This document shows, in pieces, positions 15,006 to 64,000 of a stretch of DNA of 64,000 bases. This DNA is from Macrostomum hystrix (Eukaryota > Animalia > Platyhelminthes). Location of the stretch: positions 1,426,001 to 1,490,000 of the forward strand of contig CATNEN010000041.1 in assembly GCA_950097015.1 (NCBI GenBank). Reading direction: 5' to 3'. Position 1 is the first letter of the stretch; each line of letters begins with the position of its first letter. A program made the position numbers and the translations under genes. Below the pieces are notes generated by a model. That model was not told the DNA's origin. It worked only from the letters and a program-made list of their open reading frames with translations, and did no database searches.

Positions 15006-15390
15006 GGGGTCAGTGGCAGAAGGGTTATGTATTTGCCTCTTGCACCAAGGTCCCTAAGTTCAATTCTAATGGCAAGGCCACATTTATTTGGGGCACAGCT
15101 GTGGAGAGAAGGCTTTGGGGCTATCATACAATTTGTGTCCTTGAGGGCCAACCACCAAGGCACAGTGAAGTGTATATTGCCTGACAATGAGAAAACCAGC
15201 GCAGATATACACACCAGTGTGAGCAACAGTGTATGCCTGTGTACAGTATCTGTGTGTGTGTGCTCAGGAGTCAGTGAAATGGGCAGAATTGCCTCTGCTG
15301 GCTGCAGGTCTGGTGCATGTCTGGTGCCACAAAATCATGTACCATTGCCTGCAGCTCTTCTACAATTATTATTATTATTATTACTATCAA
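15006..15390 (+). mobile_element. tRNA-derived SINE, family 1 (CpG-decayed copy) with (ATT)n tail
   Basis: Head GGGGTCAGTGGCAGA... with A/B-box-like motifs; aligns by eye with the copies at 34592-34820 (-) and 53139-53570 (+). Confidence 0.75.
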
Positions 15391-33431: not shown

Positions 33432-36400
33432 TCAGCAGACGGGCTGCAGCGGCGGCTGCTGCTTCTGACCGCCGCCTTTCTTCTTCCCGCCGCCGCCTCG
33501 CTTGGACGCCGCCGTCGGAGTCGCGGCCGACGCCGCTGCGGCAGCCGAGGAGGCGCCGACTGACGCGAAGGCCTTGGCGAAGTCGGTCTCGCACACGGGA
33601 AGGCCGCTGGGCAGCAGGGCGTAGCGGTCGCCGGTCTGTAACGGGCAGCGACACTGGGAGCAGACAAAGCACTGCACGTGGTAGACCCGGTTGTTGCTAG
33701 GGGAGCGCAGGACAAAGTCCGTGGCCGGAATGTGCATCGAGCAGCCCGCGCAGGTGCCGTGGCTGCCGAACAGCCTGCGGGAGTGGGCGGCGGTGTGGAC
33801 TGCTGGCTGGCCTGACGGAGAGGCGAGACTGGGATGGAGAGGGGAGACTGGGATGGAGAGGGGAGACTGGGATGGAGAGGGGAGACTGGGATGGAGAGGG
33901 GAGACTGGGATGGAGAGGGGAGACTGGGATGGAGAGGGGAGACTGGGATGGAGAGGGGAGACTGGGATGGAGAGGGGAGACTGGGATGGAGAGGGGAGAC
34001 TGGGATGGAGAGGGGAGACTGGGATGGAGAGGCGAGACTGGGATGGAGAGGGGAGACTGGGATGGAGAGGCGAGACTCGTAGGGAGAGAAGACTGAGGGG
34101 CGACTGGAGTTAAGGAAGTAGAGGAGGAGGCATCAGGTAGATTTGGCTGCGGTTTCCTGTGCCCCGAGTCTGTTATCGCCAACCGAAACCACAGTCCAAT
34201 TCATCCGGTGCGCATTTTACAAAAAAAAGATTCTAAAATCCAAACCCTCAGTTCTCAGACTGACAGATTTCATAGCAAGCAGTTCGGCCTAGCAACAGCT
34301 CCCATTTAGCTACTGCCCGAGTGCAGCAACCTGTTTACCCAGGTGCCCCAGTCAGTTAGCAGGCAAATATTTGATTTATTGCATGTCAACAAGCCGCGTG
34401 GTTTCATGAGCTGAAGTGCCTCAGCAAGGATAATCGAAAACAGATCTTGACAGGCACAGGCACTACACCGAGTCACTCACTGAGAAATCTAACTCTAAGG
34501 ATCCTTGGGAGCTTCTGCCACACACTGAAGGACATTGGGCAAAATGTAACAATAATATTAGCTGGAGGCTGGCTGCAGCCAGCGAGGAGGCAATTACACT
34601 CACACAGGTGTGTACATCTGCCCTGACTTTCTCATCGTCAGGCAGTGTACACTTTCACCGTGCCTTGGAGATCGGCCCTTAGGGGTGTAAATTGCACGGC
34701 AAGCCCCCAAGCCTTCTCTCCGCAACTGCGCCCCAAATGAATGTGGCCTCGCCGCGGAATCGGGCTCAGGGACCTCGGTGCGAGAGGCAAACGCGTTTGA
34801 CCGCTCTGCCACTGACCCCCAATCATGGGGATCACACTGAGGGATCATGGGGATCACACTGAGGGATCATGGGGATCACACTGAGGGATCATGGGGATCA
34901 CACTGAGGGATCATGGGGATCACACTGAGGGATCATGGGGATAAATTCTGACACACACTGAGGGATCATAGGGATCACACTGAGGGATCATGAGGATCAC
35001 ACTAAGGGATCATGGGGATCACACTGAGGGATCATGGGAATCACACTGAGGGATCATGGGAATCACACTGAGGGATCATGGGGTTGCATTCTGACACGCA
35101 ACACTAAAAGTTCAACAAGTCAGCGTTGAAGTGACGTGGTTAATTGATCTGGCAACGTCATTTCACTAATTGGCAAAGCGCGCAGTCACGCAGTCCGTCA
35201 CGATATCCTGCAGTTTTCTCTCAAATGATGATCAGCGGCGGTATTTTATGCAGTCATGCAATGAGTTGCTCATGCAGCTACGGCTGTCCCCGCGGCCATA
35301 TTTCTTTCAGCCACTGGGAGGCAATTTACAATGTCAAACTTATCATTCTTGACTCCCCATGCAGGGTGTTTGCAAATTTCATGACGAATGGATACAGCTG
35401 TTCTACTGTCGGCCCGCCTTCATTAATTCATCAGCTATTGCTGATCGTGGCGTCGTGGGGGCGGGCAGAGGGCGGGGAGGAGCGCCCCCCTGCCCCCATC
35501 CACAGGGGTGAGGAAACTGACCCCAACCCCCTCTGCACCGGCTGCAGCCCCTCCTTTGTCTGGCATTGTTGTGCGGCCATTGTGAGCGGCCCCGCAGCCC
35601 GGAGGGGAACTGGGCCGAGTGAGTAATCCCCAGCCACATCCGACTCCGCAGCGCGCCGCTTATACTGCTGCGGTCCACAGGGGAACTGACCCCCTTCTGG
35701 CGTCTTTTGAGTCTCTCCTTCGCGAGTTTCCTTCGCTTTAGAAAACAACTTGTCAATCAAAGATTTCCAGCTCCCCTCCATCTCTGGTTTGTCTGTGCGG
35801 CAACAATATCTGGCAAATTCTGGGGCGCGAGTTCTGCTCCCATTGGGAGACAAAGCGGGTTAATGAGGCCATCCAAGGCCATGAAACAGGATGAGAGATG
35901 GGATGGAGCTGCAGGCACTGGTGAGCAGTCTCACCTGATGTAGTCATTCCTGCACAGGATCATGCCTGCCCTGGCGAAGCAGGACGAGCCAAGATCTGAC
36001 AGCGGGATGCTGCAGTGGTGGCACTTCAGGCAGCGAGTGTGCCAGCAGCGGTCGACAGCCTGCAGCAGGAACTGCTCGGTGATCGGGCCGTTGCAGCCGG
36101 CGCACCAGGCGCCCTGGACTGGATGCTGCTGCTGCTGCTGTATGTGACCTCCTGGTGGAAATAAAAAACTATAAACTTAGTCAAAGTTAGCAAACTCTCA
36201 AATACAGTCAAGCCAATCACAATGTCTGGAGCTAAGTCTCATTGCACACTGGCATCTCAACCACATTTCGATTATCCATTTGATTTGTGTCAGTCCACAG
36301 TGGGACAGCCGGCAGGCCTCACCTGAATGCTGAGGGTTCAGGGGACAGTCGGCAGGCCTCACCTGAATGTGAGGGCTCAGGGGACAGTCGGCAGGCCTCA

Positions 36401-41013: not shown

Positions 41014-43122
41014 TCAGCCCTGAACCCTTGAGCTGGCCAGGCTCTGCAGGCTGCGCACAATGTCCTCTGTGTTCTCCGCCTCGCGCTGCCGGAACCTGGG
41101 CAGGTGCAGCAGGGAGTGCATGAGGCTGCAGACGCCGAAGAGGGCGCCGCTGACCAAGAATGGCACCAGATAGCCGGTGGCCTCGGTGTACAGGCAGCCG
41201 CCGATGGGGGGTCCGAAGCAGGACGAGAGGCCGCGGGCCAGCACTAGCAGCCCGAAGCCGCTGGTGACGTTCTCCAGGCCGATGAGCTGGCAGAGGATGA
41301 TGCTGGTGAGGCTGATGTAGGGCCCGGAGAAGAAGCCATACAGGGCGAACACGGTCACCATGGAGACGTAGCTGCGGCAGACAACGAGCAAAGCGGCGAA
41401 CACGCCGGTGATGAAAATCGTGACATTGTTGATAGCCAGCGGGGAGAAGTGTTTCTGCCCGGCCAGAAAGCCAAAAACGATCCTGGCGATGGTGTTGGCG
41501 GCGCCGTAGGCCGAGATGAGGGTGGGCGTGAGCGCTGCTGGGACTCCGGCCTCCTTGGCAAAGTCGCTGATGAAGAAGCCGGGAATGTAGAAGGCGATCA
41601 TGCCCACTAGGTTGGCGGCGAAGATGATGACGTAGCTGAGCTCCTTGAGGAGGCTGAAGTTCGTCATCAGCGACAGGGCATAGCGGAACGGTTTGGAAGC
41701 TCGCAGGGTGTCGAGGACACCAGTCGCCTCGATGCTTCCGTCGGCGGAGCGAGCGATGGCAGACTCCAAGTCAGTTCGCGAGGCCGGCAGCCGCGTCATG
41801 GAGAGGTACAGGTCCGCTTGCGACACGTCCTTCAGAGATCGCTTCAACCGGGGATCGTGCTGCGCCAGGTCAAAGATCGAGCTGCTCAAGAAGATGTCCT
41901 TTTGGTTCATTGGCCTGCGAACTTCCTGCAAACGGCTGCGGCTGATCAGCCGGCCGGCGCCGCCGCCTCCACCGCCGCCGACACCTCCAGTGCCCGATGT
42001 GGTGTCTGCAGCCGTTGCGCTGGTCTGGCCTCGCGGCCGGACCCGAATCTCCCTCAGGCGCATGATGTCCGGCGAAGATTCCATGAAGTCGTCGCGGTCC
42101 GCGCCGCCCGCAGCGACCACTCGCGACTTGGATGGCTGCTTCACCTGGCTGCGCTTGTAGCGAATCGCTCCAGAGTCACTGTTGGATCGCAGCCGCGAGT
42201 CCTCCGTCTCCACCGCCGCATCTACCGTGGCCTCCGTGGTCCCATTTGCAGTGGCGGCCGCCTGAGCAACGTTTTTGATATACTTTTGCACCAGGCTGCT
42301 GACATTCTTCGAACTGTTGGCATCCTCGCCGCCCACCGCAGTGGATGCGGTTGCTTCGGTTGCGGCTGCCGACCCGGATGCGCTGGCTCCCTTCAGCGGC
42401 TCTTTGACCACATCGATGGGCCGCATGAGGCAGCCGAAGACGGCGCCGTTGAGGGCGAAGCCGGCGAGAATCATGAGGCAGTTCTGCCAGCCGTAGTGCT
42501 CCAGCAGGATGCGAACCACCGGTCCCATCACCATCGTGCCGATGCCGGTGCCGCACACCGCCAGGCCCACGGCCAGGGAGCGCCGCTTGCGGAAATAAAA
42601 GTTCACGATCACGATGGACGGCAGGTACATGAGGCCGAGCCCGATGCCGCCCATCACGCCGTACAGAAGCGTCAGCGAGGTTACACTGCGGGCGAAGCTG
42701 CTGCCCAGGAAGGCCAGGCACGAGATCACGGAGCCGAGGACGCAGGTGACTCGGCAGCCGAATTTGTTCACAAGGCCGCCAGCCACGGGGCCAGACATCA
42801 GGTAGACTCCGCAAAGCAGCGAGCCAATCAGCGACAGCGAGGATTTCGGCGCTTCAGAGAAGTGGTCGATGAAGTCCACCAGCATCTCGCAGTAGGTGTT
42901 CGCGATGCCATCGATGATGAAGTTGTTGCACATGCTGGCCAGCATCACTACCCAGGCGTATCCACGGTCCAGCGGCAGCGGCAGCATCTCTTCCTCCACC
43001 TCCTCGACGACCTCCGGCTCCGCCGCTTCCGCCGCCGCTATCATCGGGGAGGCGGCGGTTGCGTTCTCCGCCTCAGCATCATTGTCCGGACCACCTTTTG
43101 GATTGTCCGTGACTTCTGGCAT
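41014..43122 (-). CDS. Monocarboxylate transporter (SLC16/MCT family, MFS), intronless, about 702 aa
   Basis: PLDRGYAWVVMLAS (variant of PPDGGWGW), LVNKFGCR, GLGLMYLPSIVIVNFYFRKRRSLAVGLA..GTGIG, HYGWQNCLMILAG. Twelve hydrophobic segments with a large central loop. First true ATG at 43122. Confidence 0.93.
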   Translation of the reverse strand: MPEVTDNPKGGPDNDAEAENATAASPMIAAAEAAEPEVVEEVEEEMLPLPLDRGYAWVVMLASMCNNFIIDGIANTYCEMLVDFIDHFSEAPKSSLSLIGSLLCGVYLMSGPVAGGLVNKFGCRVTCVLGSVISCLAFLGSSFARSVTSLTLLYGVMGGIGLGLMYLPSIVIVNFYFRKRRSLAVGLAVCGTGIGTMVMGPVVRILLEHYGWQNCLMILAGFALNGAVFGCLMRPIDVVKEPLKGASASGSAAATEATASTAVGGEDANSSKNVSSLVQKYIKNVAQAAATANGTTEATVDAAVETEDSRLRSNSDSGAIRYKRSQVKQPSKSRVVAAGGADRDDFMESSPDIMRLREIRVRPRGQTSATAADTTSGTGGVGGGGGGGAGRLISRSRLQEVRRPMNQKDIFLSSSIFDLAQHDPRLKRSLKDVSQADLYLSMTRLPASRTDLESAIARSADGSIEATGVLDTLRASKPFRYALSLMTNFSLLKELSYVIIFAANLVGMIAFYIPGFFISDFAKEAGVPAALTPTLISAYGAANTIARIVFGFLAGQKHFSPLAINNVTIFITGVFAALLVVCRSYVSMVTVFALYGFFSGPYISLTSIILCQLIGLENVTSGFGLLVLARGLSSCFGPPIGGCLYTEATGYLVPFLVSGALFGVCSLMHSLLHLPRFRQREAENTEDIVRSLQSLASSRVQG

Positions 43123-43665
43123 TTGTCCGCAACCTGGGCTCTCCCTCACCTGCTCTGCTGTTTCTCTTGTTCCCTCTGCCGGTCTGGTCCGGCCTGCCAG
43201 GTGTTTTCTACGCGGCCTTTATTGCAGCCGGTCTGGGCAGCTCGGGGGCAGAGATGTGAGAAGGTCAGCACGCGGTTCTCACGTGACCCAATTCTGGCAG
43301 GGTAACTTATCAACAACGGGCTTTTATCAGTCACGGGGGCGTTCTCGGTGTCATTCATTGTTTCCCGCGATCGGCGTTTTTGTGTTTTTTTTTCGGTTCG
43401 CGAACTTCGCAGCTACAGGTGTCACTGAGCACCTCTTATCCCGCTTATCTGGGACCCCGCAGCCCCCTGCTGTTTCAGGCGGCCCACCACCCTTCACTGC
43501 CACCTTGCTCACCCGGTCTTGAGTCAATTATCTGGTCTCAAGGCTGCCTGACACTTGCAAAAATCCAAGAGATGCTTTTGAAGTTAAGTGCGAACACAAC
43601 ACTGACAGAGGCTCCTCTTCCTTTTGCTGTGCATTCTGCGAATCGGTAGAATCTTCGTGCTTGGA

Positions 43666-46651: not shown

Positions 46652-47206
46652 CTTGCAGGCCAGCAAGTAAATCTACTGCGATCTAATTTCTCGACAATGA
46701 GCTGCAATCAGATAAGATTTAGTTCACTCTATCTGCACCAGTATTAATTTTAGGCACTCGATAGTTTTTGAGTTAAAGACAGAGCAAAAAATGTGATAAT
46801 TTCCTACTTTATCTCCGACTGCACCTAAGACTCAAAACTTCCTCTAGACTTAACTGGATACAATTGCCTACAAACCGGAGTCTGCATGCAGAATATTCTG
46901 GGCCTTCAGCCAATCATTTTTTAGTAAACCAATGTAAACTAGAGTGGAAAGAACATGAATTTCAAGAACTTCAAATGTGCACTAGGAAATCTTGTATGAT
47001 GAAGACAAAAAGTAAAAAAATCTTTTGTGGCTACTTGTGCAGCAGTGAAGGACAGAGAGGTAATTAGCGAGGCTCACTGCTGATACTTGTCGGTTGTCTT
47101 GGATACAAAAGTAGCGAGAAACAAATGCGCCGGGACACCTACTGAAATACCTGCCCAGAGCCCACGAAAAAAGCGGAATATCCACGAATTTTCCCATAAC
47201 ACATGC

Positions 47207-48256
47207 ATGGCGCTTACTTTCGCGATCTATCTGACAATCCTAGCAATGGCCTGTGGTGTCTCTGCTCAAGAGAGACAGACTGCGCTCAGGACTGTGACCA
47301 AGTGCCCATCGGCTGCCGGCATCCCTCAATTGGAGCGTCTTAGCTCCGTGTTGGATCTGGCAGCGTGTATCGTGGCGTGCGCTAACTCCGAGCGCTGCGC
47401 AGCGATGCACTTTCGGTCCAACAACTCGAGCTGCTTGCACGGCAACGTTGGTCAAGTAGCCATTGTGCTGGATCAGGTGTCCGCAAATAATGGATCTGAT
47501 GGCTGTGTGAGCCACGAGAAGCTGGGCATCTCCAATGTGCTGCCTCCGACTGCAGCTGCAGCAGTGGCTCCTCCCGCGGGACTCAGTTCGGGCCTGTTCG
47601 CTAAGCTGCTCATTCTCTTCGACTTCAGACAGAGTTTCTTGAACCTCGTGAACCCCGCTAGATTCGCTGCAACGCCTCGCGGGTCCGTCTTCCGGGACAG
47701 TCAGGGCGCCAACTTTCCTGGAGGCAACACTTCCGACTTCATCGAAGTGGACACGGAGAACGGAACTCTGGTTCCAAATTACCTGGACGCGGAGAAAAAC
47801 TTCACCTTCTTTGCTAGAGTCGTGCGTCAAACGTACAGCATGCAGAGCTACCACTATTTTTTTTACTCATCTTTCGGCTACGTGGCCTTCTTCGGTGACC
47901 GATACGGAAAGCTTGTGGTTGAACACATGTATCCTAGCGTGCCTGGCCATCACTTCGAGAAGTTCGAAGCTCAGGAGTCAACGGAAGCCATTGTTTCAAC
48001 GAGTTTTGAACCTCAGGCCGTGTGGGCGGGAGCAGTGTTCAATGGGAAAAACCTAACGCATCTGTACATGAATGGCTCTCTGGTCAGTACAGGATCATAT
48101 TCTGCTTGGGGTCGTAACGAGCCACCAATGTACCTGCGCCTCGGATACTGCCACACAGTAGCTGACGTGCTGAAAGGAAAGATGATCTGCTACTCAGTTG
48201 CCAAGGACGCGCTCACCATAGCTGAACTTCGTGAACTGAACGCCTTTTGTGGCTAG
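47207..48256 (+). CDS. Secreted protein, 349 aa: signal peptide, PAN/apple-like domain and concanavalin A/LamG-like domain; intronless
   Basis: Signal peptide MALTFAIYLTILAMACGVSA. PAN-like Cys pattern C...AACIVACANSERCAAMHF...SSC. C-terminal beta-rich domain (LLILFDF, FTFFARV, VWAGAVFNGKNLTHLYMNGSLV, LRLG...LKGKM.CY.V...ALT..E..EL) typical of Laminin_G_3/pentraxin-like folds. Confidence 0.8.
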   Translation: MALTFAIYLTILAMACGVSAQERQTALRTVTKCPSAAGIPQLERLSSVLDLAACIVACANSERCAAMHFRSNNSSCLHGNVGQVAIVLDQVSANNGSDGCVSHEKLGISNVLPPTAAAAVAPPAGLSSGLFAKLLILFDFRQSFLNLVNPARFAATPRGSVFRDSQGANFPGGNTSDFIEVDTENGTLVPNYLDAEKNFTFFARVVRQTYSMQSYHYFFYSSFGYVAFFGDRYGKLVVEHMYPSVPGHHFEKFEAQESTEAIVSTSFEPQAVWAGAVFNGKNLTHLYMNGSLVSTGSYSAWGRNEPPMYLRLGYCHTVADVLKGKMICYSVAKDALTIAELRELNAFCG

Positions 48257-48796: not shown

Positions 48797-49115
48797 GGCG
48801 GGGGAGTGTGGCGGAAAGTGCAAATTTCGATGTCTGTATGCTACATTTACTTGTTATTTAATGTCTATTTTTCTTCACTAAATTCAGATTGAATTCTCAG
48901 ACCATTATCTAATGTACGCTTATGTTCTCTTCGCTGCACCGCTCTAACTTATGTGCATGGACTCGTCTCGATCTCTACCCTCCCAATGTGCGTGCGATTT
49001 CTCTCTTAAGTTAAGCCTCTCAATTCAGTCCTCTGAACCCTTAATAAACGTGAGCTGTAGTACGAGCTAAGGCGCAGGTGGAGAGAGTTTTACTCAGCAG
49101 TCAAACCACACCACA
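48797..49115 (+). mobile_element. Putative polypurine tract plus 3' LTR of an LTR retrotransposon (LTR 48807-49115, 309 bp)
   Basis: GGCGGGGGAG immediately precedes TGTGG...; the segment ends in ...CCACA (inverted termini TGTGG/CCACA) and has AATAAA at 49043-49048. No second LTR or gag-pol is present in the window. Confidence 0.5.
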
Positions 49116-50371
49116 ACACTCTTCTGACTTCATTCAACTGCATGGAATAGTTCCAACACTCTTCTGACTTCATTCAACTGCATGGAATAGTTCCAACACT
49201 CTTCTGACTTCATTCAACTACATGGAATAGTTCCAACACTCTTATGACTTCATTCAACTGCATGGAATAGTTCCAACACTCTTCTGACTTCATTCAACTA
49301 CATGGAATAGTTCCAACACTCTTCTGACTTCATTCAACTACATGGAATAGTTCCAACACTCTTCTGACTTCATTCAACTGCATGGAATAGTTCCAACACA
49401 CTTCTGACTTCATTCAACTGCATGGAATAGTTCCAACACTCTTCTGACTTCATTCAACTGCATGGAATAGTTCCAACACACTTCTGACTTCATTCAACTG
49501 CATGGAATAGTTCCAACACTCTTCTGACTTCATTCAACTGCATGGAATAGTTCCAACACACTTCTGACTTCATTCAACTGCATGGAATAGTTCCAACACT
49601 CTTCTGACTTCATTCAACTGCATGGAATAGTTCCAACACTCTTCTGACTTCATTCAACTGCATGGAATAGTTCCAACACTCTTCTGACTTCATTCAACTA
49701 CATGGAATAGTTCCAACACTCTTCTGACTTCATTCAACTGCATGGAATAGTTCCAACACTCTTCTGACTTCATTCAACTACATGGAATAGTTCCAACACT
49801 CTTCTGACTTCATTCAACTACATGGAATAGTTCCAACACTCTTCTGACTTCATTCAACTACATGGAATAGTTCCAACACTCTTCTGACTTCATTCAACTG
49901 CATGGAATAGTTCCAACACTCTTCTGACTTCATTCAACTACATGGAATAGTTCCAACACTCTTCTGACTTCATTCAACTACATGGAATAGTTCCAACACT
50001 CTTCTGACTTCATTCAACTACATGGAATAGTTCCAACACTCTTCTGACTTCATTCAACTACATGGAATAGTTCCAACACTCTTCTGACTTCATTCAACTA
50101 CATGGAATAGTTCCAACACTCTTCTGACTTCATTCAACTGCATGGAATAGTTCCAACACTCTTCTGACTTCATTCAACTACATGGAATAGTTCCAACACT
50201 CTTCTGACTTCATTCAACTACATGGAATAGTTCCAACACTCTTCTGACTTCATTCAACTACATGGAATAGTTCCAACACTCTTCTGACTTCATTCAACTA
50301 CATGGAATAGTTCCAACAGTCTTCTGACTTCGATCAACTACATGGAATAGTTCCAACACTCTTCTGACTTC
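49114..50371. repeat. 40-bp minisatellite (CAACACTCTTCTGACTTCATTCAACT[A/G]CATGGAATAGTTC), about 31 copies
   Basis: Near-identical head-to-tail units with no spacers. Confidence 0.97.
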
Positions 50372-51379
50372 CTCTCTGCCAGGCCTCCATCGCTGATCAG
50401 ACCGATCGCCAATCCATTTGTTTGAACATTACTTTGCTGCCTGGGTCCCAGACCATGAGGCTTCGAAGTCTGTTCTCTGTCGACTGTAGCGTTAGAGAGC
50501 TACCACTCCTAGAGAAGGCACAAGGCAGGAGCCATTTGCTACGATATACGAAGTCTCCATCCCCTCAATTAGGACACTCCTTAGAATCCTTTGATGTAGC
50601 CGCATTAGTAACAAAATGGAAGTTAGGTAGATGTCCGCTCCGAGATCGAGTTGGTTCCGATGAAGCTACAAAAAATTGAGCTTAGGAACTAAATTAGGAG
50701 CTAATTTTCGCCCTATTTTATTCGCTATAGTAATTGTCACGACTTCGCTTTGACGGCGTGTACTATGGTGTTTTTTTAGTTTTACTAGAGCGTTCCATGG
50801 CTGCCTCTATGCCTTTCATTCTGCAGACATTCCAGAACCTCTGCAAATCCTATTTTACCACGAAATCAACAAAGTAAAGTGGGTCTTGTAACTTTATTAT
50901 TGAAGGGTGAACAAAATTTGTTCACTTTCCCAGCAGTGAAGTCTTTCTATTTACTCTCAAAACACGCATTTCGACTCCTCGCAGACACTTTTTGCCGATT
51001 GCTTGCTATATGTTTAAGACAAATATTGCAGCCGTTGGGGGCAAGGACGGCTTTATGTGCAATGTAAATAACAGAGTAGAATTCCTCCAGTATTTACATC
51101 CGCGCATTTTTTACCATCAAAAGTCGAATGTCACTTTCCGAAGCGCATAATTTTTGCTATTGACATCTGACAAAACCGGGACTTAACAATTGTAAAAGAC
51201 GCATATAATATGAAATCCGAAGAGATGTGAAGGCTTTTTACGCATTTAAATGAGTGCAATTTTAATTGGCAGCAAAATTAGCAACTAGTTACTTGTCAGT
51301 TCTAATTCCGCTCACTAGAATTTTGAGTTTCATGAAGCGCGCATCGCAAAGTATTTGTGTCTCCAGTTGTAATGATGAA

Positions 51380-51672
51380 GATGGCTCAGTTTCATGCAGA
51401 GCGTCGAGCGTCGGACTCATGACTTGAAGGCCGGGGTTCGATTCGACTCCATTAGAACAACTTGTCCTTTAGCAACTTCTATGCATCACTTCGGTTCACA
51501 CAGCTGGTACCAGCATCAGCTGGGGTAATCCAGCGTGGCTGTGGCGTCCCTCCCAGTCCCTGGACTGAACAGCCGTACGCAGCCTTCAGAAGCTCCGCAT
51601 AATAGCTGCGGCTGTGCTGTTGGTTGCACATCTGGTCTGATTGGGGCAGGTATAATAAAATATTATTATTTT
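51380..51672 (+). mobile_element. tRNA-derived SINE family 2, CpG-rich copy
   Basis: B-box GGGGTTCGATTCGACTCC; body colinear with 18204-18500; AT-rich tail. Confidence 0.75.
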
Positions 51673-53138
51673 ATAAATGCTCGAATTTATACGAGCCTCG
51701 TACGTGCCTTAATTCTGAAAAATTTCTTCCTTTGCACGTTGATTTGCACCTTGCGCATTAGATCAGCATATTTGCACTTGTACACAGTTTGTGTTCGGGA
51801 GAGCCGATATTCAGTTAGTCCTAAATTCTAGAAAACCAATTGTACATGGAGTGGTTAAAGGAACAAAGACTACTCAGTGGTCCTTGGGAGTGGTCCAGAG
51901 TTTTCAAGAATAGGAAGTGAAAATGTTGAAGGCATAAACGACTCTACCGGGAACTACGAACTTTACCGATGTTGATATTAACACATGTACGTGTAAATAA
52001 CCTTGCATGTTTATGTGCATTCAGAGCTGTTTCTTTGAATAAAATAGCGAGAAAATCGAGAGTTTATCGAAACCACGGAACAGGATATTATCGGTTCTAA
52101 TAGTAACAATGAAAAACACCAGAAAGCCAAAAGTAAATGCATAAAAATCCGAAAATTTTAGGATTGCTTCACATAACAGTTTTCTAGATTTACTAGCCCT
52201 GCATTGACAATATGGCAGTATTTTTTATTTGTGCAAAATCCAGTAAAACTGCGTTAACGTTATATTAAACGACAAAAAGAAGCCACAAAAGGCATTTGCT
52301 TAAAGCAAGCTCAAAATTTTAAGTTCTATCTAAAAAGGTAGCAGTGCTTTATTTATATATACTTTTATTCAGATACTTTTATCAAAACTTTTTGTTTTAC
52401 ATCAGATGCAAAAAAAGTTAGCAGGTTTTAAAAATTTTCGTGCACGTAAAACGAATTGCAGAAACTTAGCGCGCATCACGCAAAATGTGATTGATAATTA
52501 CGATTTAACAGATTACAACGCATTATACTCTAAATTTGACCAACAAGTCCATCTCTGCTTGTTTATAGGAACGCATACTAACAAAACCGCTGACCATTGC
52601 TGAGTAGTGCCTACTATACTCTCAGAAACAAAAGCAGTTCCTTGTAATGTTTGTGAATGTCTGTTATTTAAAGTTTATGAATCTTAAGCCTAAACTTAAA
52701 CTTTAATGAAACAAATGAAAGTTTAGCGTCTGAATATGAATTTAATTAGCTTTCTATGGCAAACATATTTTAATTTGTACAAAATAGCAAGTATACAGAA
52801 ATACTTAAAATGCTCATTGCTGAACAAATATTTTCACTCAAGCATTTATGGCTTCTAAGTTGTTTGTTTACCCTTACAGAAGCTTCTATCAAAGTGAAAA
52901 ACACTAATTCTGACTCCTAATGGAACGAAATTAGCTATCTGTTGAATAAAAGCAAAAATACTGTTATTGTATTTATTCTACAAAAGTTAAAGTAAAACTT
53001 AATTAAAATGTATTTTAAGCTTTTGATTTTCAAAAATAAAGACACAAAATATCAATAATGTGACTGTTAAACATACAAAGGTACAGAGCTACAGGCACAA
53101 TACTTGTAGTTATATGATACTTGGGTAAGATATTTTAT

Positions 53139-53570
53139 GGGGAGAGTGCAGAGTAGTTTATGTGCCTCTATTATCTATTACTATGCCTCTTTGGGCATAT
53201 GCCTCTCCTCTTCATTTTGGGGTGTAGCAACAGAGATGGCTTAGGGGCTGTTCTGCAATTTATGCCCTTCAGGACCAATCTTCAATCATGGCGAAGCTAG
53301 TCTGCTCATAGTCCCCAGTGACGCAGCCGCAGCTGATGCCAAACTGGGACCCGAACGCGGCCTCCCAATGTGCCTGCTTCTCCACAAAAAGCACAGTGAA
53401 AGTGTATACTGCCTGGACATTGAGAAAGTGTGAGCATGTGCCTGTATATGATATCTGTGTGCATTTGCTTAGGAGCCAGTAGAATGGGCAGAAGTGCTTC
53501 TTCACTGGTTGCAGGTCTAGTGTCACCAAAGGGTGTGCCTTTGTATGCAGTCCTCCTGCAATAAAAATAT
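53139..53570 (+). mobile_element. SINE family 1, old CpG-free copy, split by a 100-bp insertion at 53281-53380
   Basis: The 5' half (TTCATTTTGGGG...TGCAATTTATGCCCTTCAGGACCAATC) and 3' half (TCCA...GCACAGTGAAAGTGTATACTGCCTG) are colinear with the other family-1 copies. Confidence 0.7.
53281..53382 (-). pseudogene. Inverted copy of part of HFM1 exon 3 (EKQAHWEAAFGSQFGISCGCVTGDYEQTSFAMIE)
   Basis: The reverse complement aligns without gaps to about 55311-55412, with roughly 8 substitutions. Confidence 0.9.
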
Positions 53571-54290
53571 TCTAAGGAAGTTCCACTATAAGATTCATCT
53601 CAGACTAAAATGGCTACCAGAACTTGTAAAAAGGCAACTATTGTACATACATTATATTCTTCCTTTCTATTAACATTTTTTCTTATGTCAAGTAGAGTTT
53701 TTATCAGCAAATAAAAGCACATTTTCTAGCTAAAATAGTTACCTCCTATTACCTTCAATTGGACTTTAACTTTTATTTTAATAACAAATTTCCCTTTTAT
53801 GGTTTATCTGTTATATTTTATTTTAAATGAAAGACGATGTGAAACTTTTCGCAGCCTGTAATAAAAAAATTAACGACCGCAAACTTGTTTTGACATTGTT
53901 GTTCTTTGCATCAATTAAAGCATGTGAGCCAATTTATAAATTTTATAATCATAGAATATATTTCTCTAGTAAAATTTGCATTGCATACAAACTAACTACA
54001 AGCTACTAGCTGATAGTTTTCAAGTGATAATAAAATTATAGTTTTTTTATCAAACACAAAAGACAAACCGAACATTTTTCATTTCAAGATTTATATTTTT
54101 ACTGTTTCATCACTAAGTGCAATGTCTCGACGAGTTGCTGCCATGATTCATATCCTTTTAACAAAACTTTTAAAAATCTAAACTCTGTGTTGTGAGTTAT
54201 GCTTTTAAGTGACAAATCGAGAAAAAAAGTTTCTCTTTAAAATTATGATTTTATGTTACTTTCCAACCTGTCTCACGTAGCCTGAAATAG

Positions 54291-57200
54291 TACGAAAATT
54301 TCTTAACTCCATTTTTTCGTCATGCTATACCTCCGGAGTACCACTCTGTATTCCCATTTGAGCAATTCAATTCAATGCAGGCGGACATTCTACCCATGGT
54401 GCGTTTTACTGCTTACTGTCAGTTTTTTAACTGGTCGGAACATTCTGTGTGGTTTTTTATTCTCCACCCAGTCGGTGGGTTGTAATTTTTCACGCAATCT
54501 GTGGGTTGTTATTCTCCACGCAGTCTGTGGGTTGTTGTTCTCCACGCAGTCGATGGGTTGTAATTCTCCACGCAGTCTGTGGGTTGTTATTCTCCACGCA
54601 GTCTGTGGGTTGTAATTTTCCACGCAGTCTGTGGGTTGTTACTCCGTCCCAATCAAATGAAATTTTACGTAACACGAAACGCCGCCTCGCAACACCCATC
54701 CGAAGGCGCTGGGCTCAGACCGCAATCTCGTCGTGTCAGCGCCCACCGGCAGCGGCAAGACTGTCGCATTCGACCTGGCCATCATCAGGAGCCTCATGGA
54801 ACAGCGGCGAACAGGCAGCGAGTTCAAGAAGGCGGTCTATAGTGAGTGCTAGTTCTCAGATGGCATTGTAATCCTTACAGATCCTCAGATCAGGCCGCTA
54901 TCCTCCCAGATCCTCAGATCAGGCCGCTATCCTCTCAGATCCTCAGATCAGGCCGCTATCCTCTCAGATCCTCAGATCAGGCCGCCATCCTCCCAGATCC
55001 TCAGATCAGGCCGCTATCCTCTCAGATCCTCAGATCAGGCCGCTATCCTCTCAGATCCTCAGATCAGGCCGCTATCCTCTCAGATCCTCAGATCAGGCCG
55101 CTATCCTCTCAGATCCTCAGATCAGGCCGCCATCCTCCCAGATCCTCAGATCAGGCCGCTATCCTCTCAGATCCTCAGATCAGGCCGCTATCCTCTCAGA
55201 TCCTCAGATCAGGCCGCTATCCTCTCAGATCCTCAGATCAAGTCTCTGACGCTCTTCCTCTCCCATCCGCGTTTGCCACCACAGTCTCTCCCCTGAAGGC
55301 GCTCTGCGAAGAGAAGCAGGCGCACTGGGAGGCCGCGTTCGGGTCCCGGTTTGGCATCAGCTGCGGCTGCGTGACCGGGGACTATGAGCAGACTAGCTTC
55401 GCCGAGATTGAGCGCCTAGGCATTATCGCCACCACACCGGTGAGGCTGCTTCTGTGTATGGGAGTGAGATTGGAAGCAATTTCAGCGATGGTTGAATTGC
55501 TTCTAAAGAGCTTTTCATCTAGGTTATAGAATTAGATCTAAAAGCTGTGTAAAATATTCTTGCACATGGCTCAGAAAGCAATCTTCTGACCTTCACCTGT
55601 AACTATTTTCTGCCCTACTCTCTTGCCTATACTATTCTCTCTTCCTTCTCTCATTCTTTTGGATTCCATCTAAACTTCCTGGTATCCAAAAGACAGCATC
55701 TCCTTGACTTCTCCTGTGCCTGTCAGGAAAGTGCATGGAAAAAACTCTGCTGGTTTATTGTCAAACAGTGTAAAACCTGCGCGCTGACATTTTATTAAAA
55801 GGAGAAATGGGACAGCCTGACAAGACGGTGGCGTGAGAGCGTCGGCTTCATGTCCAGCATCGGCCTGTTTATGATTGATGAGGTGAGTCATGAGAACAGG
55901 AAGATCTCTTTCTAAGAAATATTAAAAGAACTTTCATATTTTTGTTTTTACCAGTACACAAAATGCATGAATCCTCAAAATCCCCATTGCCCATAATGTA
56001 CACTCAGCCCTCCTCAGCCCATTCGCCACAATGTACACACAGCCCTCCGCAGCCCATTAGCCACAATGTACACACAGCCCTCCGCAGCCCATTCGCCACA
56101 ATGTACACATAGCCCTCCGCAGCCCATTCGCCACAATGTACACACAGCCCTCCGCAGCCCATTCGCCACAATGTACACACAGCCCTCCGCAGCCCATTCG
56201 CCACAATGTACACACAGCCCTCCTCAACCCCATTCGCCACAATGTACACACAGCCCTCCACAACCCCATTCGCCACAATGTACACACAGCCCTCCTCAAC
56301 CCGCCACAATGTACACACAGCCCTCCTCAACCCCATTCACATCCATCGGCCTCCTCAAACGAAGACCTCATGCCCCAGCCATCCCCCGATCTCTCTCAAA
56401 GGTTCACGTAATCCATGAGGCCAGGCGGGGCGCGGTTGTGGAGGCGGCCATCAGCCGGATGCTGCTGGTTGCCCGGCTGTCCGACACCGCCTGTCGATTT
56501 CGCTTTGTTGCCGTGTCGGCCACAGCACCGAACGTGGAAGATGTAAGCGAGCTTACTGTTAACTTGTTTTTGTTCTCATTGTTGTTGTATTTGCCGCTTC
56601 CCAGGCCATGGGAAATCGCCAGGATATGCTGCGCTGGGTTGGCTCCACAGGTCAAGGAGCACCAGGTCGGTAGGATGAGCAGTGCAGTTAAAAAGGTGCG
56701 CCACCGAATCTTCATCTGGCACCTGGGGCAGATGGGGAGGACTTCAGGGTCCAGCTTCGACTGGTAGGTCGCGAGCAAGCGGCAATCCCGGACCTCAGCT
56801 GCGAGAGGGTGACCCTGATCTTCCGGCTCAAACTGCGCTCCGTATGGTTGATGTTGCGGGCCGGCCTACTGAGGAGACTGTGAGCAGGCCTGCTGTGGCA
56901 TAGTGAATCGCTTTGAGATCGCTGATGTCCAGAGTGATGGATTTGATGGAGCTGATGAGAGGCTGGAGGCGCGTGAGTAAGTTAGAAGCAAGGCCCTGAA
57001 GACTGTTCCGAAGGGCGGCAGGTGGCTGAGAGAATATGCCCAGCTGTGACAGCCGGAGATGATGTGCAAAGCCGAATTCTGAGCTGCTTGGAGGGTGTTC
57101 CAGCTCGAATCGCTGAGGAGCGGGACGGCTGAGCAGTAGTTAAGCACCGAGCGCCCGAAGGCTTTGTAGGTGACAGTTTCCTTATCCTGCCCCCAGGATG

Positions 57201-58708
57201 TTAGCGCGAAGGATGTTATTAGTGCTGCCGACGGAGTGAGCGAGTGAACATGAAACTTGAGCAGAGGATCGAAAGTAACGCCGAGAATCTTGGGCGAGGT
57301 GCAGTAAGCCAGGCTGGCCCCGTTGAGATAGAGCGGAGGAGCAGCGGAGTCCGACAATTCTCATCGGGCTGTCTGGTGGCAAAAACCACCAATATAGACA
57401 TAATTGTGCTCTTCACAAAATTTCATCGAGTATTCATGTCGGCTATAATTTTTTTTAGTGTTTTAATTATAATGTTGATTAATATAATGTTAAACCAATA
57501 TGGATTTCGCATAGACGTTCGGTTTGGGAGCACTGCGAGCATGAGTAATGCAGTGGGTATTTAAAAGCATGCTCTTTTCTACTGTTAGTCGAAACTCACA
57601 GATTCGCATGAATAGAATGAATAGAACAAAACAGATCTTGCCACTCACTGCCTGCAGCTGTCGCGCTGGCTCACTGATGCTGACGGGCAGGAGGCCGCAT
57701 TCTACCGGTGAGTTGCTGCTCCAGCTTTCTTAGGTGTCCAAGATTTCTTGTCTCCAAAATTGTGTCCTGTGGCGGTGACCAGTTGCAGTTGCAGAGACCC
57801 GTAATATTCTGTGGCAGTGACCAGTGGCAGTAGCAGTGACCCGTAATATTCTGTGGCAGTGACCAGTGGCAGTAGCAGTGACCTGTAATATTCTGTGACG
57901 GTGACCAGCGGCAGTAGCAGTGACCCATAATATTCTGTGACGGTGACCAGTGGCAGTAGCAGTGACCTGTAATATTCTGTGGCGGTGACCAGCGGCAGTA
58001 GCAGTGACCCGTAATATTCTGTGGCAGTGACCAGTGGCAGTAGCAGTGACCCGTAATATTCTGTGGCAGTGACCAGTGGCAGTAGCAGTGACCTGTAATA
58101 TTCTGTGACGGTGACCAGTGGCAGTAGCAGTGACCCATAATATTCTGTGACGGTGACCAGTGGCAGTAGCAGTGACCCGTAATATTCTGTGGCAGTGACC
58201 AGTGGCAGTAGCAGTGACCCGTAATATTCTGTGGCGGTGACCAGTGGCAGTAGCAGTGACCTGTAATATTCTGTGGCGGTGACCAGCGGCAGTAGCAGTG
58301 ACCTCTAATATTCTGTGGTAGTGACCAGTGGCAGAAGCAGTGACCCGTAATATTCTGTGGCGGTGACCAGTGGCAGTAGCAGTGACCTGTAATATTCTGT
58401 GGCGGTGACCAGTGGCAGTAGCAGTGACAGATAGGCTCATAAGCAGATACAATGGGAAATGGTACTGAGGACCCACCGCATAGAAACTAATCCACACAGC
58501 ACTTTTGCATATTTGCTCGCAACGCCTCACACCCCGCGCCGTCCCTCAACTCAGGGCGGACCAACGCTCGCGCCCGGTGCCGCTCAAGACGCTGGTGCTG
58601 GGCTACCACCGCGGCCCTGACCAAACTGCCTTCAAGTTCGACATGAACCTGAACTACCGCCTGGCTGGCCTGGTGGCAGCCCACGCTGAGGGCAAGCCTG
58701 CTCTGATT
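54291..58708 (+). CDS. HFM1: HFM1/MER3 meiotic Ski2-like DExH helicase, partial; exons 54291-54398, 54706-54841, 55285-55439, 55802-55882, 56402-56542, 57658-57707, 58555-58708
   Basis: FPFEQFNSMQ (Q motif), SAPTGSGKT (Walker A), SPLKALC, VTGD, TTP|EKWDSLTRRW, MIDE|VH (DEVH), RGAVVE, RFVAVSAT.PN, RPVPL..LVLG, FKFDMNLNY (HFM1-specific), GKPALI. All six introns are GT-AG with consistent phases. The start codon and the C-terminal half were not found. Confidence 0.92.
54452..54640. repeat. 26-bp minisatellite (TCTGTGGGTTGTTATTCTCCACGCAG) in HFM1 intron 1
   Basis: About 7 copies visible. Confidence 0.88.
54877..55240. repeat. 29-bp minisatellite (AGATCCTCAGATCAGGCCGCTATCCTCTC) in HFM1 intron 2
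   Basis: About 12 copies visible. Confidence 0.93.
55993..56335. repeat. 35-bp minisatellite (CACAATGTACACACAGCCCTCCGCAGCCCATTCGC) in HFM1 intron 4
   Basis: About 10 copies visible. Confidence 0.92.
56565..57365 (-). mobile_element. 5'-truncated, degenerate non-LTR retrotransposon (LINE) 3' end in HFM1 intron 5
   Basis: Post-RT motifs PKILGVTFDPLLKF..H, TSWGQDKET..TYKAFGRSVLNY, LQAAQNSAL..ISGC, TLSQLRSG. C-terminal zinc knuckle CPRC..EDSVAHLFNC, frameshifted. (CAA)n-like tail at about 56565-56590. Confidence 0.82.
57765..58428. repeat. 42-bp minisatellite (GTGACCAGTGGCAGTAGCAGTGACCCGTAATATTCTGTGGCA) in HFM1 intron 6
   Basis: About 16 copies visible. Confidence 0.95.
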
Positions 58709-58987
58709 GTGAGTCTCTGATTGTGAGGCTTTCGTACTACCTGAGAAGCTGCAGTAGTGAGAACATATTGAATAAGAAGTATTCTTTGTTATTGTCTCGC
58801 GCCTGAGCAGCTGAGTAAGGGACTGGCTGCCGGTCTAATTGTGTACTTCGAATGGGGATTTGGAGCATGCTTGAACTCTGTAAGAGAGTTTGTTGACCGC
58901 TCGCTTCGCTACGGATCTTTCCAGCAACAAAAAGCTGAATATATATTTCCAAACTTTCATATTATTTAAGGAGTAGATTTCACTTTC

Positions 58988-61877
58988 CCAAAATTGCATA
59001 TTCCCCAAGCATGGGATTTCAGTCTCCCCAAATTTCATATTCCCCAAGCATGGGATCTCAGTCTCCCCAAATTTCATATTCCCCAAGCATGGGATCTCAG
59101 TCGCCCTAAATTTCATATTCCCCAAGCATGGGATCTCAGTCTCCCCAAATTTCATATTCCCCAAGCATGGGATCTCAGTCGCCCTAAATTTCATATTCCC
59201 CAAGCATGGGATCTCAGTCGCCCTAAATTTCATATTCCCCAAGCATGGGATCTCAGTCTCCCCAAATTTCATATTCCCCAAGCATGGGATCTCAGTCTCC
59301 CCAAATTTCATATTCCCCATCTATTGGATCTCAGTCTCCCCAAATTTCATATTCCCCAAGCATGGGATCTCAGTCTCCTCAAATTTCATATTCCCCAAGC
59401 ATGGGATCTCAGTCTTCCCAAATTTCATATTCCCCATCTATTGGATCTCAGTCTCCCCAAATTTCATATTCCCCATCTATTGAATCTCAGTCTCCCCAAA
59501 TTTCATATTCCCATCTATTGAATCTCAGTCTCCCCAAATTTCATATTCCCCATCTATTGGATCTCAGTCTCCCCAAATTTCATATTCCCTATCTATTGAA
59601 TCTCAGTCTCCCCAAATTTCATATTCCCTATCTATTGAATCTCAGTCTCACCAAATTTCATATTCCCCATCTATTGAATCTCAGTCTCCCCAAATTTCAT
59701 ATTCCCCATCTATTGAATCTCAGTCTCCCCAAATTTCATATTCCCCATCTATTGAATCTCAGTCTCCCCAAATTTCATATTCCCCATCTATTGGATCTCA
59801 GTCTCCCCAAATTTCATATTCCCCATCTATTGAATCTCAGTCTCCCCAAATTTCATATCCCCATCTATTGAATCTCAGTCTCCCCAAATTTCATATTCCC
59901 CATCTATTGGATCTCAGTCTCCCCAAATTTCATATCCCCCATCTATTGAATCTCAGTCTCCCCAAATTTCATATTCCCCATCTATTGAATCTCAGTCTCC
60001 CCAAATTTCATATTCCCCATCTATTGAATCTCAGTCTCCCCAAATTTCATATTCCCCATCTATTGGATCTCAGTCTCCCCAAATTTCATATTCCCCATCT
60101 ATTGAATCTCAGTCTCACCAAATTTCATATTCCCTATCTATTGAATCTCAGTCTCCCCAAATTTCATATTCCCCATCTATTGAATCTCAGTCTCCCCAAA
60201 TTTCATATTCCCCATCTATTGAATCTCAGTCTCCCCAAATTTCATATTCCCTATCTATTGAATCTCAGTCTCCCCAAATTTCATATTCCCCATCTATTGA
60301 ATCTCAGTCTCCCCAAATTTCATATTCCCCATCTATTGGATCTCAGTCTCCCCAAATTTCATATTCCCCATCTATTGAATCTCAGTCTCCCCAAATTTCA
60401 TATTCCCCATCTATTGGATCTCAGTCTCCCCAAATTTCATATTCCCCATCTATTGAATCTCAGTCTCCCCAAATTTCATATTCCCCATCTATTGAATCTC
60501 AGTCTCCCCAAATTTCATATTCCCCATCTATTGAATCTCAGTCTCCCCAAATTTCATATTCCCCATCTATTGAATCTCAGTCTCCCCAAATTTCATATTC
60601 CCCATCTATTGAATCTCAGTCTCCCCAAATTTCATATTCCCTATCTATTGGATCTCAGTCTCCCCAAATTTCATATTCCCCATCTATTGAATCTCAGTCT
60701 CCCCAAATTTCATATTCCCCATCTATTGAATCTCAGTCTCCCCAAATTTCATATTCCCCATCTATTGAATCTCAGTCTCCCCAAATTTCATATTCCCCAT
60801 CTATTGAATCTCAGTCTCCCCAAATTTCATATTCCCCATCTATTGAATCTCAGTCTCCCCAAATTTCATATTCCCCATCTATTGAATCTCAGTCTCCCCA
60901 AATTTCATATTCCCCATCTATTGAATCTCAGTCTCCCCAAATTTCATATTCCCCATCTATTGAATCTCAGTCTCCCCAAATTTCATATTCCCCATCTATT
61001 GAATCTCAGTCTCCCCAAATTTCATATTCCCCATCTATTGAATCTCAGTCTCCCCAAATTTCATATTCCCCATCTATTGAATCTCAGTCTCCCCAAATTT
61101 CATATTCCCCATCTATTGGATCTCAGTCTCCCCAAATTTCATATTCCCTATCTATTGAATCTCAGTCTCCCCAAATTTCATATTCCCCATCTATTGGATC
61201 TCAGTCTCCCCAAATTTCATATTCCCCATCTATTGAATCTCAGTCTCCCCAAATTTCATATTCCCTATCTATTGGATCTCAGTCTCCCCAAATTTCATAT
61301 TCCCCATCTATTGAATCTCAGTCTCCCCAAATTTCATATTCCCCATCTATTGAATCTCAGTCTCCCCAAATTTCATATCCCCATCTATTGGATCTCAGTC
61401 TCCCAAATTTCATATTCCCCATCTATTGGATCTCAGTCTCCCCAAATTTCATATTCCCCATCTATTGGATCTCAGTCTCCCCAAATTTCATATTCCCCAT
61501 CTATTGAATCTCAGTCTCCCCAAATTTCATATTCCCCATCTATTGAATCTCAGTCTCCCCAAATTTCATATCCCCATCTATTGGATCTCAGTCTCCCAAA
61601 TTTCATATTCCCCATCTATTGGATCTCAGTCTCCCAAATTTCATATTCCCCATCTATTGAATCTCAGTCTCCCCAAATTTCATATTCCCCATCTATTGAA
61701 TCTCAGTCTCCCCAAATTTCATATTCCCTATCTATTGAATCTCAGTCTCCCCAAATTTCATATTCCCCATCTATTGAATCTCAGTCTCCCCAAATTTCAT
61801 ATTCCCCATCTATTGAATCTCAGTCTCCCCAAATTTCATATTCCCCATCTATTGAATCTCAGTCTCCCCAAATTTCT
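58988..61877. repeat. 39-bp satellite (CCCCAAATTTCATATTCCCCATCTATTGAATCTCAGTCT)n, about 2.9 kb, with two variant blocks
   Basis: Read directly; units up to about 59400 mostly carry AAGCATGGG in place of ATCTATTGA. Confidence 0.97.
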
Positions 61878-62819: not shown

Positions 62820-63176
62820 CCCTGATCCCTGGGCTGCCGTCAAAACACGGAGACGTCTTGACCGTGTCCGCTTTGCCTTAATGTCGGGAGGGAGGCTGGC
62901 TTCTTATTGATGATCTGATATACTGATCCCCATCTGCTAGTTTGTTTCCTTCTACTAGGATATTAATCCCACGATATTGCATTCTGTAAGGATCTTCTTT
63001 CGCATGAATATCGCACTTCTTAAGTATAAAATTATATTATAATGGAACTTACCAACCAAGCCACTTATGCCGCATTAGATTTTTTCCTTTTTTAGGTGCG
63101 GGACCGAATACGAAAAACAGGGAAAAATTCGTTTACTTGTACTTTTTCCACGCTTGAGCCCGCTTTTAAGGAGCAC

Positions 63177-64000
63177 TGAGTCCGCCTTGTACAGGAAGGA
63201 GCATCGAGTCCGCCTTGTACAGGAAGGAGCATCGAGTCCGCCTTGTACAGGAAGGAGCATCGAGTCCGCCTTGTACAGGAAGGAGCATCGAGTCCGCCTT
63301 GTACAGGAAGGAGCATCGAGTCCGCCTTGTACAGGAAGGAGCATCGAGTCCGCCTTGTACAGGAAGGAGCATCGAGTCCGCCTTGTACAGGAAGGAGCAT
63401 CGAGTCCGCCTTGTACAGGAAGGAGCATCGAGTCCGCCTTGTACAGGAAGGAGCATCGAGTCCGCCTTGTACAGGAAGGAGCATCGAGTCCGCCTTGTAC
63501 AGGAAGGAGCATCGAGTCCGCCTTGTACAGGAAGGAGCATCGAGTCCGCCTTGTACAGGAAGGAGCATCGAGTCCGCCTTGTACAGGAAGGAGCATCGAG
63601 TCCGCCTTGTACAGGAAGGAGCATCGAGTCCGCCTTGTACAGGAAGGAGCATCGAGTCCGCCTTGTACAGGAAGGAGTATCGAGTCCGCCTTGTACAGGA
63701 AGGAGCATCGAGTCCGCCTTGTTCAGGAAGGAGCATCGAGTCCGCCTTGTTCAGGAAGGAGCATCGAGTCCGCCTTGTACAGGAAGGAGCATCGAGTCCG
63801 CCTTGTACAGGAAGGAGCATCGAGTCCGCCTTGTACAGGAAGGAGCATCGAGTCCGCCTTGTTCAGGAAGGAGCATCGAGTCCGCCTTGTACAGGAAGGA
63901 GCATCGAGTCCGCCTTGTACAGGAAGGAGCATCGAGTCCGCCTTGTACAGGAAGGAGCATCGAGTCCGCCTTGTACAGGAAGGAGCATCGAGTCCGCATA
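63177..64000. repeat. 28-bp minisatellite (GAGTCCGCCTTGTACAGGAAGGAGCATC)n, running off the window end
   Basis: About 29 near-identical copies. Confidence 0.97.

Follow-up and report, generated by a model that had tools for sequence, protein, structure and literature searches.

An inverted copy of part of an HFM1 exon inside an old SINE in the flatworm Macrostomum hystrix

Results

The locus and the donor gene

The window analysed here is a stretch of 64,000 nucleotides of contig C41 of the Macrostomum hystrix assembly (CATNEN010000041.1 of GCA_950097015.1, positions 1,426,001 to 1,490,000 of the forward strand), and all positions given below are those of the window unless a contig is named. 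In its last quarter lie the first recognisable exons of a helicase gene and, upstream of them, a short interspersed repeat that is interrupted by a piece of the third of these exons in reverse orientation. The features that the argument needs are the following.

53140-53285, plus strand: left part of the host SINE (decayed tRNA-like head, then body to the insertion point), placed by alignment with the family consensus, which holds to ...CTTCAA at 53285
53282-53382, minus strand: inverted copy of an internal piece of HFM1 exon 3, 101 nt, 94 of them identical, unique genome-wide apart from the exon
53383-53389, no strand: CACAAAA at the right junction, aligning cleanly to neither the exon nor the SINE consensus
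53388-53562, plus strand: remainder of the host SINE body on the right, sharing 75-81% identity with other copies, then an A/T-rich tail to about 53570
54291-54398, plus strand: first recognisable coding exon, with a candidate SL trans-splice acceptor
54706-54841, plus strand: exon 2 with the Walker A motif GSGKT (Pfam DEAD, E=1.9e-7), splice sites read from the sequence
55285-55440, plus strand: HFM1/Mer3-like exon 3, between the acceptor cacag and the donor gtgagg, encoding ...SPLKALCEEK...IIATTP
55311-55411, plus strand: donor segment inside exon 3, defined by the inverted-repeat search and by alignment
about 56396-56545 and about 58526-58714, plus strand: further exons, neighbours of exon 3

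Exon 3 gives a weak but collinear Pfam DEAD match (profile positions 52-102), and its full 51 amino acids align to helicase homologues which share the motif pattern of this helicase group. The exons, including some that lie past the end of the window, match a 1166-aa protein named "DNA 3'-5' helicase" collinearly along C41, and a single Sec63 match is found at C41:1494725-1495177, 4.7 kb past the window end. HFM1/Mer3 proteins combine one helicase cassette with one Sec63 domain, and Brr2 and ASCC3 have two of each. Two genes with a double Sec63, on C5 and C8, show the Brr2/ASCC3 layout, and the gene studied here is the only one in the genome with a single cassette and a single Sec63. Judged by its predicted domains, the donor gene is of HFM1/Mer3 architecture with a Ski2-like DEAD/DEAH helicase core; the exons were searched singly, and the name HFM1 as used below refers to this domain layout. 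Sequence searches of the PDB with single exons gave no match. In a search of protein representatives the closest matches to exon 3 were at most 48% identical and mostly unnamed, and no entry from M. hystrix itself was returned; these homologues served to polarise the two amino-acid changes described below, and neither to name the gene nor to place its N-terminus.

Several other features of this part of the window were recorded. Minisatellite arrays occupy 49114-50371, 54448-54639, 54871-55240, 55983-56338, 57767-58428, 58986-61876 and 63168-63997, so that every intron examined in this part of the gene, and the upstream spacer as well, contains one (periods of 26-42 bp, up to 74 copies, 86-99% matches). 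A segment of 202 bp at 50493-50694 has a counterpart of 100% identity at C38:11906148-11906349 and another of 99% identity at C1:10636991-10637192; it matched no Rfam family, and both a repeat of very recent origin and an undescribed small RNA gene are conceivable. Further upstream, an intronless ORF on the minus strand (41014-43149, 711 aa) looks like a multi-pass membrane transporter.

The host element

The repeat that surrounds the insert belongs to a family with more than 1000 candidate copies genome-wide, whose consensus of about 330 bp ends with a (TTA)n-type tail. The window copy extends from about 53140-53148 to 53562 and then into an A/T tail to about 53570. The 5' end of its left part is uncertain by about 10 nt, and BLAST alignments to other copies span 53211-53281 of this part. 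Once the insert is removed, the window copy aligns unbroken over the junction with 26 copies from other contigs, and two further copies in the window, at 15013-15370 (plus strand) and 34596-34812 (minus strand), are also continuous across the insertion point. A preliminary description of this DNA, made from the letters of the window, had stated that other copies read through the site, and these 26 and 2 copies bear it out; the junction string which it quoted could be traced to the copy at 34.6 kb.

The element is short, non-coding, present in high copy number and ends in a simple-repeat tail, and its identification as a SINE is well supported. A derivation from a tRNA is weakly suggested, by a full-length match of the Rfam tRNA model on the head of one copy (L013), which is below threshold (15.5 bits, E=2.1), and by pol III A and B box-like motifs seen by eye in the SINE head. 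ARAGORN found no tRNA in the SINE head, and Rfam at the gathering threshold over 48-56 kb found no tRNA or other RNA. Two 11-nt stretches on either side of the element (53127-53137 and 53564-53574, 9 of 11 positions identical) are a possible target-site duplication of the host SINE; as they sit in A/T-rich sequence, they may equally be due to chance or to a decayed tail.

The inverted copy and its junctions

A repeat search of the window returned an inverted repeat with arms of 101 nt at 53282-53382 and 55311-55411, which are 93% complementary and lie 1928 nt apart. In the gap-free alignment of the insert with the exon segment, 94 of the 101 positions are identical and seven differ. The antisense piece of exon 3 that the preliminary description had seen within the SINE is thus confirmed, with its bounds corrected from 53281-53380 to 53282-53382. 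The insert preserves the reading frame of the exon on the minus strand, and at the source exon 3 is intact, in frame and flanked by both splice sites. The insert is a copy from an exon of the meiotic helicase gene HFM1, reversed and placed in an old SINE about 1.9 kb upstream.

A search of the whole assembly (about 220 Mb; 220,453,370 bases in 42 contigs) found only two copies of the 101-nt piece, the insert and the exon, which excludes a paralogue, a homeologue or a processed copy as the donor. Of the two donors that had been proposed earlier, this gene and a paralog or homeolog, the first therefore stands and the second falls: there is no second copy at the DNA level, and no other helicase gene with a single cassette and Sec63. 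The copied piece begins 26 nt into exon 3 and stops 29 nt short of its donor site. As it is internal to one exon, a DNA template and a cDNA template would be indistinguishable, and the earlier remark that the insert holds no intron sequence, true in itself, is uninformative about the template.

At the left junction the SINE reading is good to 53285 (...CTTCAA, where the consensus has ...CTCCAA) and the exon reading starts at 53282 (TCAATC...), with a microhomology of 3-4 nt, TCAA/CAA at 53282-53285, that is common to both. At the right junction the exon reading ends at 53382 (...GCTTCTC), and its last three bases, CTC at 53380-53382, are also found in the SINE consensus just before CAA. The microhomology had been reported as only TC; in fact the left end shares TCAA/CAA and the right end CTC. 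The SINE unambiguously resumes at about 53388-53390 (...AAGCACAGTG), and 5-7 nt at this junction are of ambiguous origin: the bases at 53383-53389 may represent filler, a few duplicated bases of the SINE or a variant of the SINE at this locus. Given this ambiguity, a duplication of 2-6 nt of SINE bases at the insertion site is possible. No SINE sequence was lost on insertion.

These junctions bear directly on retroposition. Like the fragments that LINE machinery leaves behind (processed pseudogenes and class 1 TSIPs), the insert is an exon-only gene fragment at a new site, but it differs from them in showing no clear target-site duplication of at least 5 bp and no tail at its sense 3' end. Both hallmarks were sought at the junctions, and neither was clearly present. 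The sole A-run (A5, 53386-53390) lies at the end opposite to the sense 3' end, which directly abuts the SINE. Since one other SINE copy in the genome carries CCTCAAAAAGCAC at the insertion site, this A-run is better attributed to the SINE than to a poly(A) tail. With neither a clear duplication of at least 5 bp nor a tail at the sense 3' end, LINE-mediated retroposition was rejected. The absence of the marks of retroposition, already remarked upon in the preliminary description, is upheld: there is no convincing tail or target-site duplication, and there is short microhomology at both ends.

Relative age and decay of the insert and its host

The insert and its host differ strongly in their CpG content. 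The host SINE has no CpG, where the family consensus has 22, and the insert has 6, where the exon segment has 10; the earlier observation of a CpG-free host with several CpGs in the insert is borne out at 0 against 6. The SINE has thus lost 22 of 22 consensus CpGs, at a non-CpG divergence of 12.6%, and the insert has lost 4 of 10 and keeps 6, with three non-CpG differences in 81 sites (3.7%). Both contrasts between the SINE and the insert are significant by Fisher's test (p=2e-4 for CpG, p=0.015 for non-CpG divergence). The insert is clearly younger than the SINE, but not recent; the claim of a younger insert holds on the loss of 4 of 10 against 22 of 22 CpGs together with the lower non-CpG divergence.

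Among the seven differences between the insert and the exon, four have CpG in the exon and TpG or CpA in the insert. Two amino acids are changed in the insert: one change is R to Q, the other E to M, which takes up two of the seven base differences, one of the two being also a CpG difference from among the four. The exon segment represents the conserved original, alignable to helicase homologues, and at the changed positions several homologues keep R and many keep E; both amino-acid changes are hence derived in the insert. Two synonymous differences, at exon positions 55325 and 55373, carry no polarity. The differences had been described as mostly synonymous or CpG transitions, which holds for the four of seven that are of the CpG type and has to be completed by the two amino-acid changes. 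Because both of these fall on the side of the insert, the insert would be decaying neutrally. The same differences speak to the reading in which a chimeric read placed exon sequence in the SINE during assembly or polishing. Such an artefact should be identical or nearly identical to its source, and here 7 of 101 positions differ in a pattern of CpG decay, in an assembly which is reported to be based on long reads and polished to QV 42.8 (PMC10468722); we regard an artefact as hardly credible.

The complete loss of CpG from the host could also have been inherited from a CpG-poor subfamily, in which case the argument on age would fall. This was rejected, as the TG and CA states of the window copy differ from those of the other copy without CpG, as they would with independent decay, and from this independence it follows that the CpG loss of the SINE occurred in place. 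Methylation-driven decay is plausible, as the genome has a DNMT1-like gene at C2:2150957-2160021 whose product has RFD and methylase domains. As a side observation, CpG retention varies sharply among the SINE copies compared (L004-L031 and the window copy at 53140-53562). At 2-8% divergence, most copies still have 70-90% of their CpGs; none is left in the window copy or in L024, and L031 lacks the majority, at modest non-CpG divergence. Locus-specific germline methylation of SINE copies is suggested by patterns of this kind in the sequence.

The start of HFM1 and the inverted repeat

The two arms of the repeat lie within 2 kb of each other beside the beginning of a gene, and the insert could be co-transcribed with HFM1 and pair with exon 3, in a duplex of up to 101 bp that would affect splicing, editing or small RNA production. 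This functional idea is of consequence only if transcription runs through both arms. The arms lie on the same DNA strand, so that one transcript could carry both, and for a single RNA containing them the predicted duplex is very stable at -212 kcal/mol and includes runs of 47 and 28 pairs if G-U pairs are counted.

The start of HFM1 bears on this reading. Just upstream of the first recognisable exon a stop codon lies in frame, at 54288, and no ATG in that frame precedes the conserved motif. Candidate acceptors are the AG at 54289-54290 and the AG at 54337-54338, each followed by an in-frame codon; with the second of them the exon would begin at 54339. The SL RNA genes of this genome, located with the SL sequence taken from PMC8629364, end in ...TTGCATG followed by GTAAG, with ATG directly before the donor, and SL trans-splicing affects about 20% of the genes in M. 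hystrix (PMC10468722). On these sequence features, the spliced leader may supply the AUG of HFM1, and if it does, the SINE would lie in the outron or in promoter DNA. The genome has two variants of SL RNA genes (C39:12667898-12753120, and C15, C17 and C42): variant 1, whose 3' end is identical to that of the M. lignano SL, is arrayed at a period of about 11.6 kb, and variant 2, which has CTCTCTTTTTTGCATG, forms a tandem array on C39 with a period of about 927 bp.

An exon without ATG that fits an SL trans-splice acceptor thus weighs against a shared transcript, as it leaves the SINE at best in an outron, and so do the 717 bp from the end of the SINE to the acceptor, which have 24-32% GC and are non-coding in appearance. 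The differences between the arms look like neutral decay and not like maintenance. Pol III transcription from the SINE head would end at a TTTT run at 53215, short of the insert; antisense RNA driven by the SINE itself was considered in its own right and is unlikely, since the head is heavily decayed and the TTTT run lies upstream of the insert. A functional inverted repeat of this kind, which the preliminary description had proposed, appears very improbable to us. The same slender chance attaches to its broader form, in which the inverted copy would lie in the outron or an upstream intron of HFM1, pair back onto exon 3 within the primary transcript and yield a 101-bp dsRNA that would tune the splicing, editing or small-RNA silencing of a crossover-promoting helicase in a self-fertilising flatworm.

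Two features upstream bear on the extent of the gene. The intronless ORF at 47087-48256 (plus strand, 389 aa) sets an upstream limit for the start of HFM1. A GC-rich island at 51.4-51.7 kb was considered as a first exon or promoter and rejected, as it belongs to another SINE family. This second family (51400-51675 in the window) has more than 2000 candidate copies genome-wide, with a head that is tRNA-like by eye and a tail of ATT repeats.

Discussion

The evidence set out above points to a local templated insertion that is now a neutral relic, and we consider this the probable explanation. The event has an intact source, microhomology at both junctions and a close inverted template, as expected from a template switch. 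If patches were placed at random, one would fall within 2 kb of its source with a probability of about 2e-5, and for this reason we take the templating to have been local. A broken or stalled 3' end inside the SINE would have annealed through TCAA/CAA to the nearby exon DNA, would have been extended by about 100 nt on the exon template, and would then have been released to rejoin or resume in the SINE through the CTC microhomology. This could have been a template switch of the MMBIR/FoSTeS type or synthesis-dependent end joining; as there is a single event, the enzymology is not readable from this locus. Afterwards the copy would have drifted, with decay of CpG sites and change of two codons, as in unselected DNA. 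Templated insertion from nearby sequence had been proposed in the preliminary description, and the local, inverted and intact donor together with the microhomology at both ends supports it.

Some features do not sit easily with this local templated insertion. A copy of 101 nt from 1.9 kb away is longer and comes from farther than typical polymerase-theta insertions, the 5-7 nt at the right junction fit no model cleanly, and 2-6 nt of the SINE may have been duplicated. In addition, an RNA template, in the form of a nascent HFM1 transcript, would give the same product. Under this last reading, a nascent and tethered HFM1 transcript would have been reverse-transcribed at a double-strand break in the SINE and end-joined, as in class 2 TSIPs. 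The insert holds exon sequence only, and sense RNA primed from the left break end predicts exactly the antisense orientation that is seen. The lack of a clear target-site duplication and of a tail, the microhomology and the possible filler are all features listed for class 2 TSIPs (PMC5110952). However, the piece lies wholly in one exon, so that no spliced junction marks an origin from RNA, and a free mRNA would seldom land 2 kb from its own gene. HFM1 is moreover expected to be a low-abundance meiotic transcript, which we count against a patch made from RNA. Taken together, we find a patch templated by RNA unlikely.

As a third route, a free DNA fragment of about 100 nt, such as a by-product of replication or resection from the sister chromatid or the homologue, would have been captured and ligated into the break by end joining. 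Capture of fragments at breaks is documented (PMC5110952), and it would agree with the fact that the SINE lost no sequence and with the possible few filler bases at the right junction. Nevertheless, annealing and priming account better for the microhomology at both ends than blunt ligation does, and the closeness of the donor, although compatible with free fragments, is not predicted by them. Fragment capture is in our opinion decidedly improbable.

Compared with described systems, the insertion in the SINE is a known kind of event. Insertions by MMBIR with microhomology and nearby, often inverted, templates have been described (PMC8421209), as have break-repair patches with microhomology (PMC5110952). 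Like the MMBIR/FoSTeS events (PMC8421209), the event is a copy and not a cut, with short microhomology at both switch points, a nearby inverted template and an intact donor; most of the catalogued events, by contrast, are shorter and were recorded in somatic, cancer or disease settings, whereas here the insertion is fixed in the germline and has 101 nt copied from 1.9 kb away, and the likeness is one of a mechanism inferred from one product only. With the class 2 TSIP patches (PMC5110952) it shares a short copy of unique genomic or transcribed sequence, the absence of a clear target-site duplication and of poly(A), the microhomology and the possible filler. Those patches usually have distant donors, whereas this insert was copied from 1.9 kb away on the same chromosome, and they are thought to be RNA-mediated, whereas here RNA is the less likely template. 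Polymerase-theta end joining (PMC7165422, PMC2943611) likewise uses priming at microhomology, synthesis, release and rejoining, and inverted snippets are common among its products, but its typical inserts have a few to about 30 nt and come from within tens of bases (PMC11724301, PMC2943611). We rejected the assignment to this class (TMEJ), which is marked by short inserts from the flanks of the break, as 101 nt from 1.9 kb do not have that form.

In conclusion, the insert looks like an ordinary scar of DNA repair or replication which is decaying and shows no sign of function. It provides a clean and datable templated insertion in the germline outside the usual human, yeast and fly systems, for which the many SINE copies make it possible to reconstruct the state before the insertion, and whose donor survives intact 1.9 kb off. 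Cases such as this one help to calibrate how frequently, and over what distance, nearby DNA is copied during repair or replication in the animal germline.
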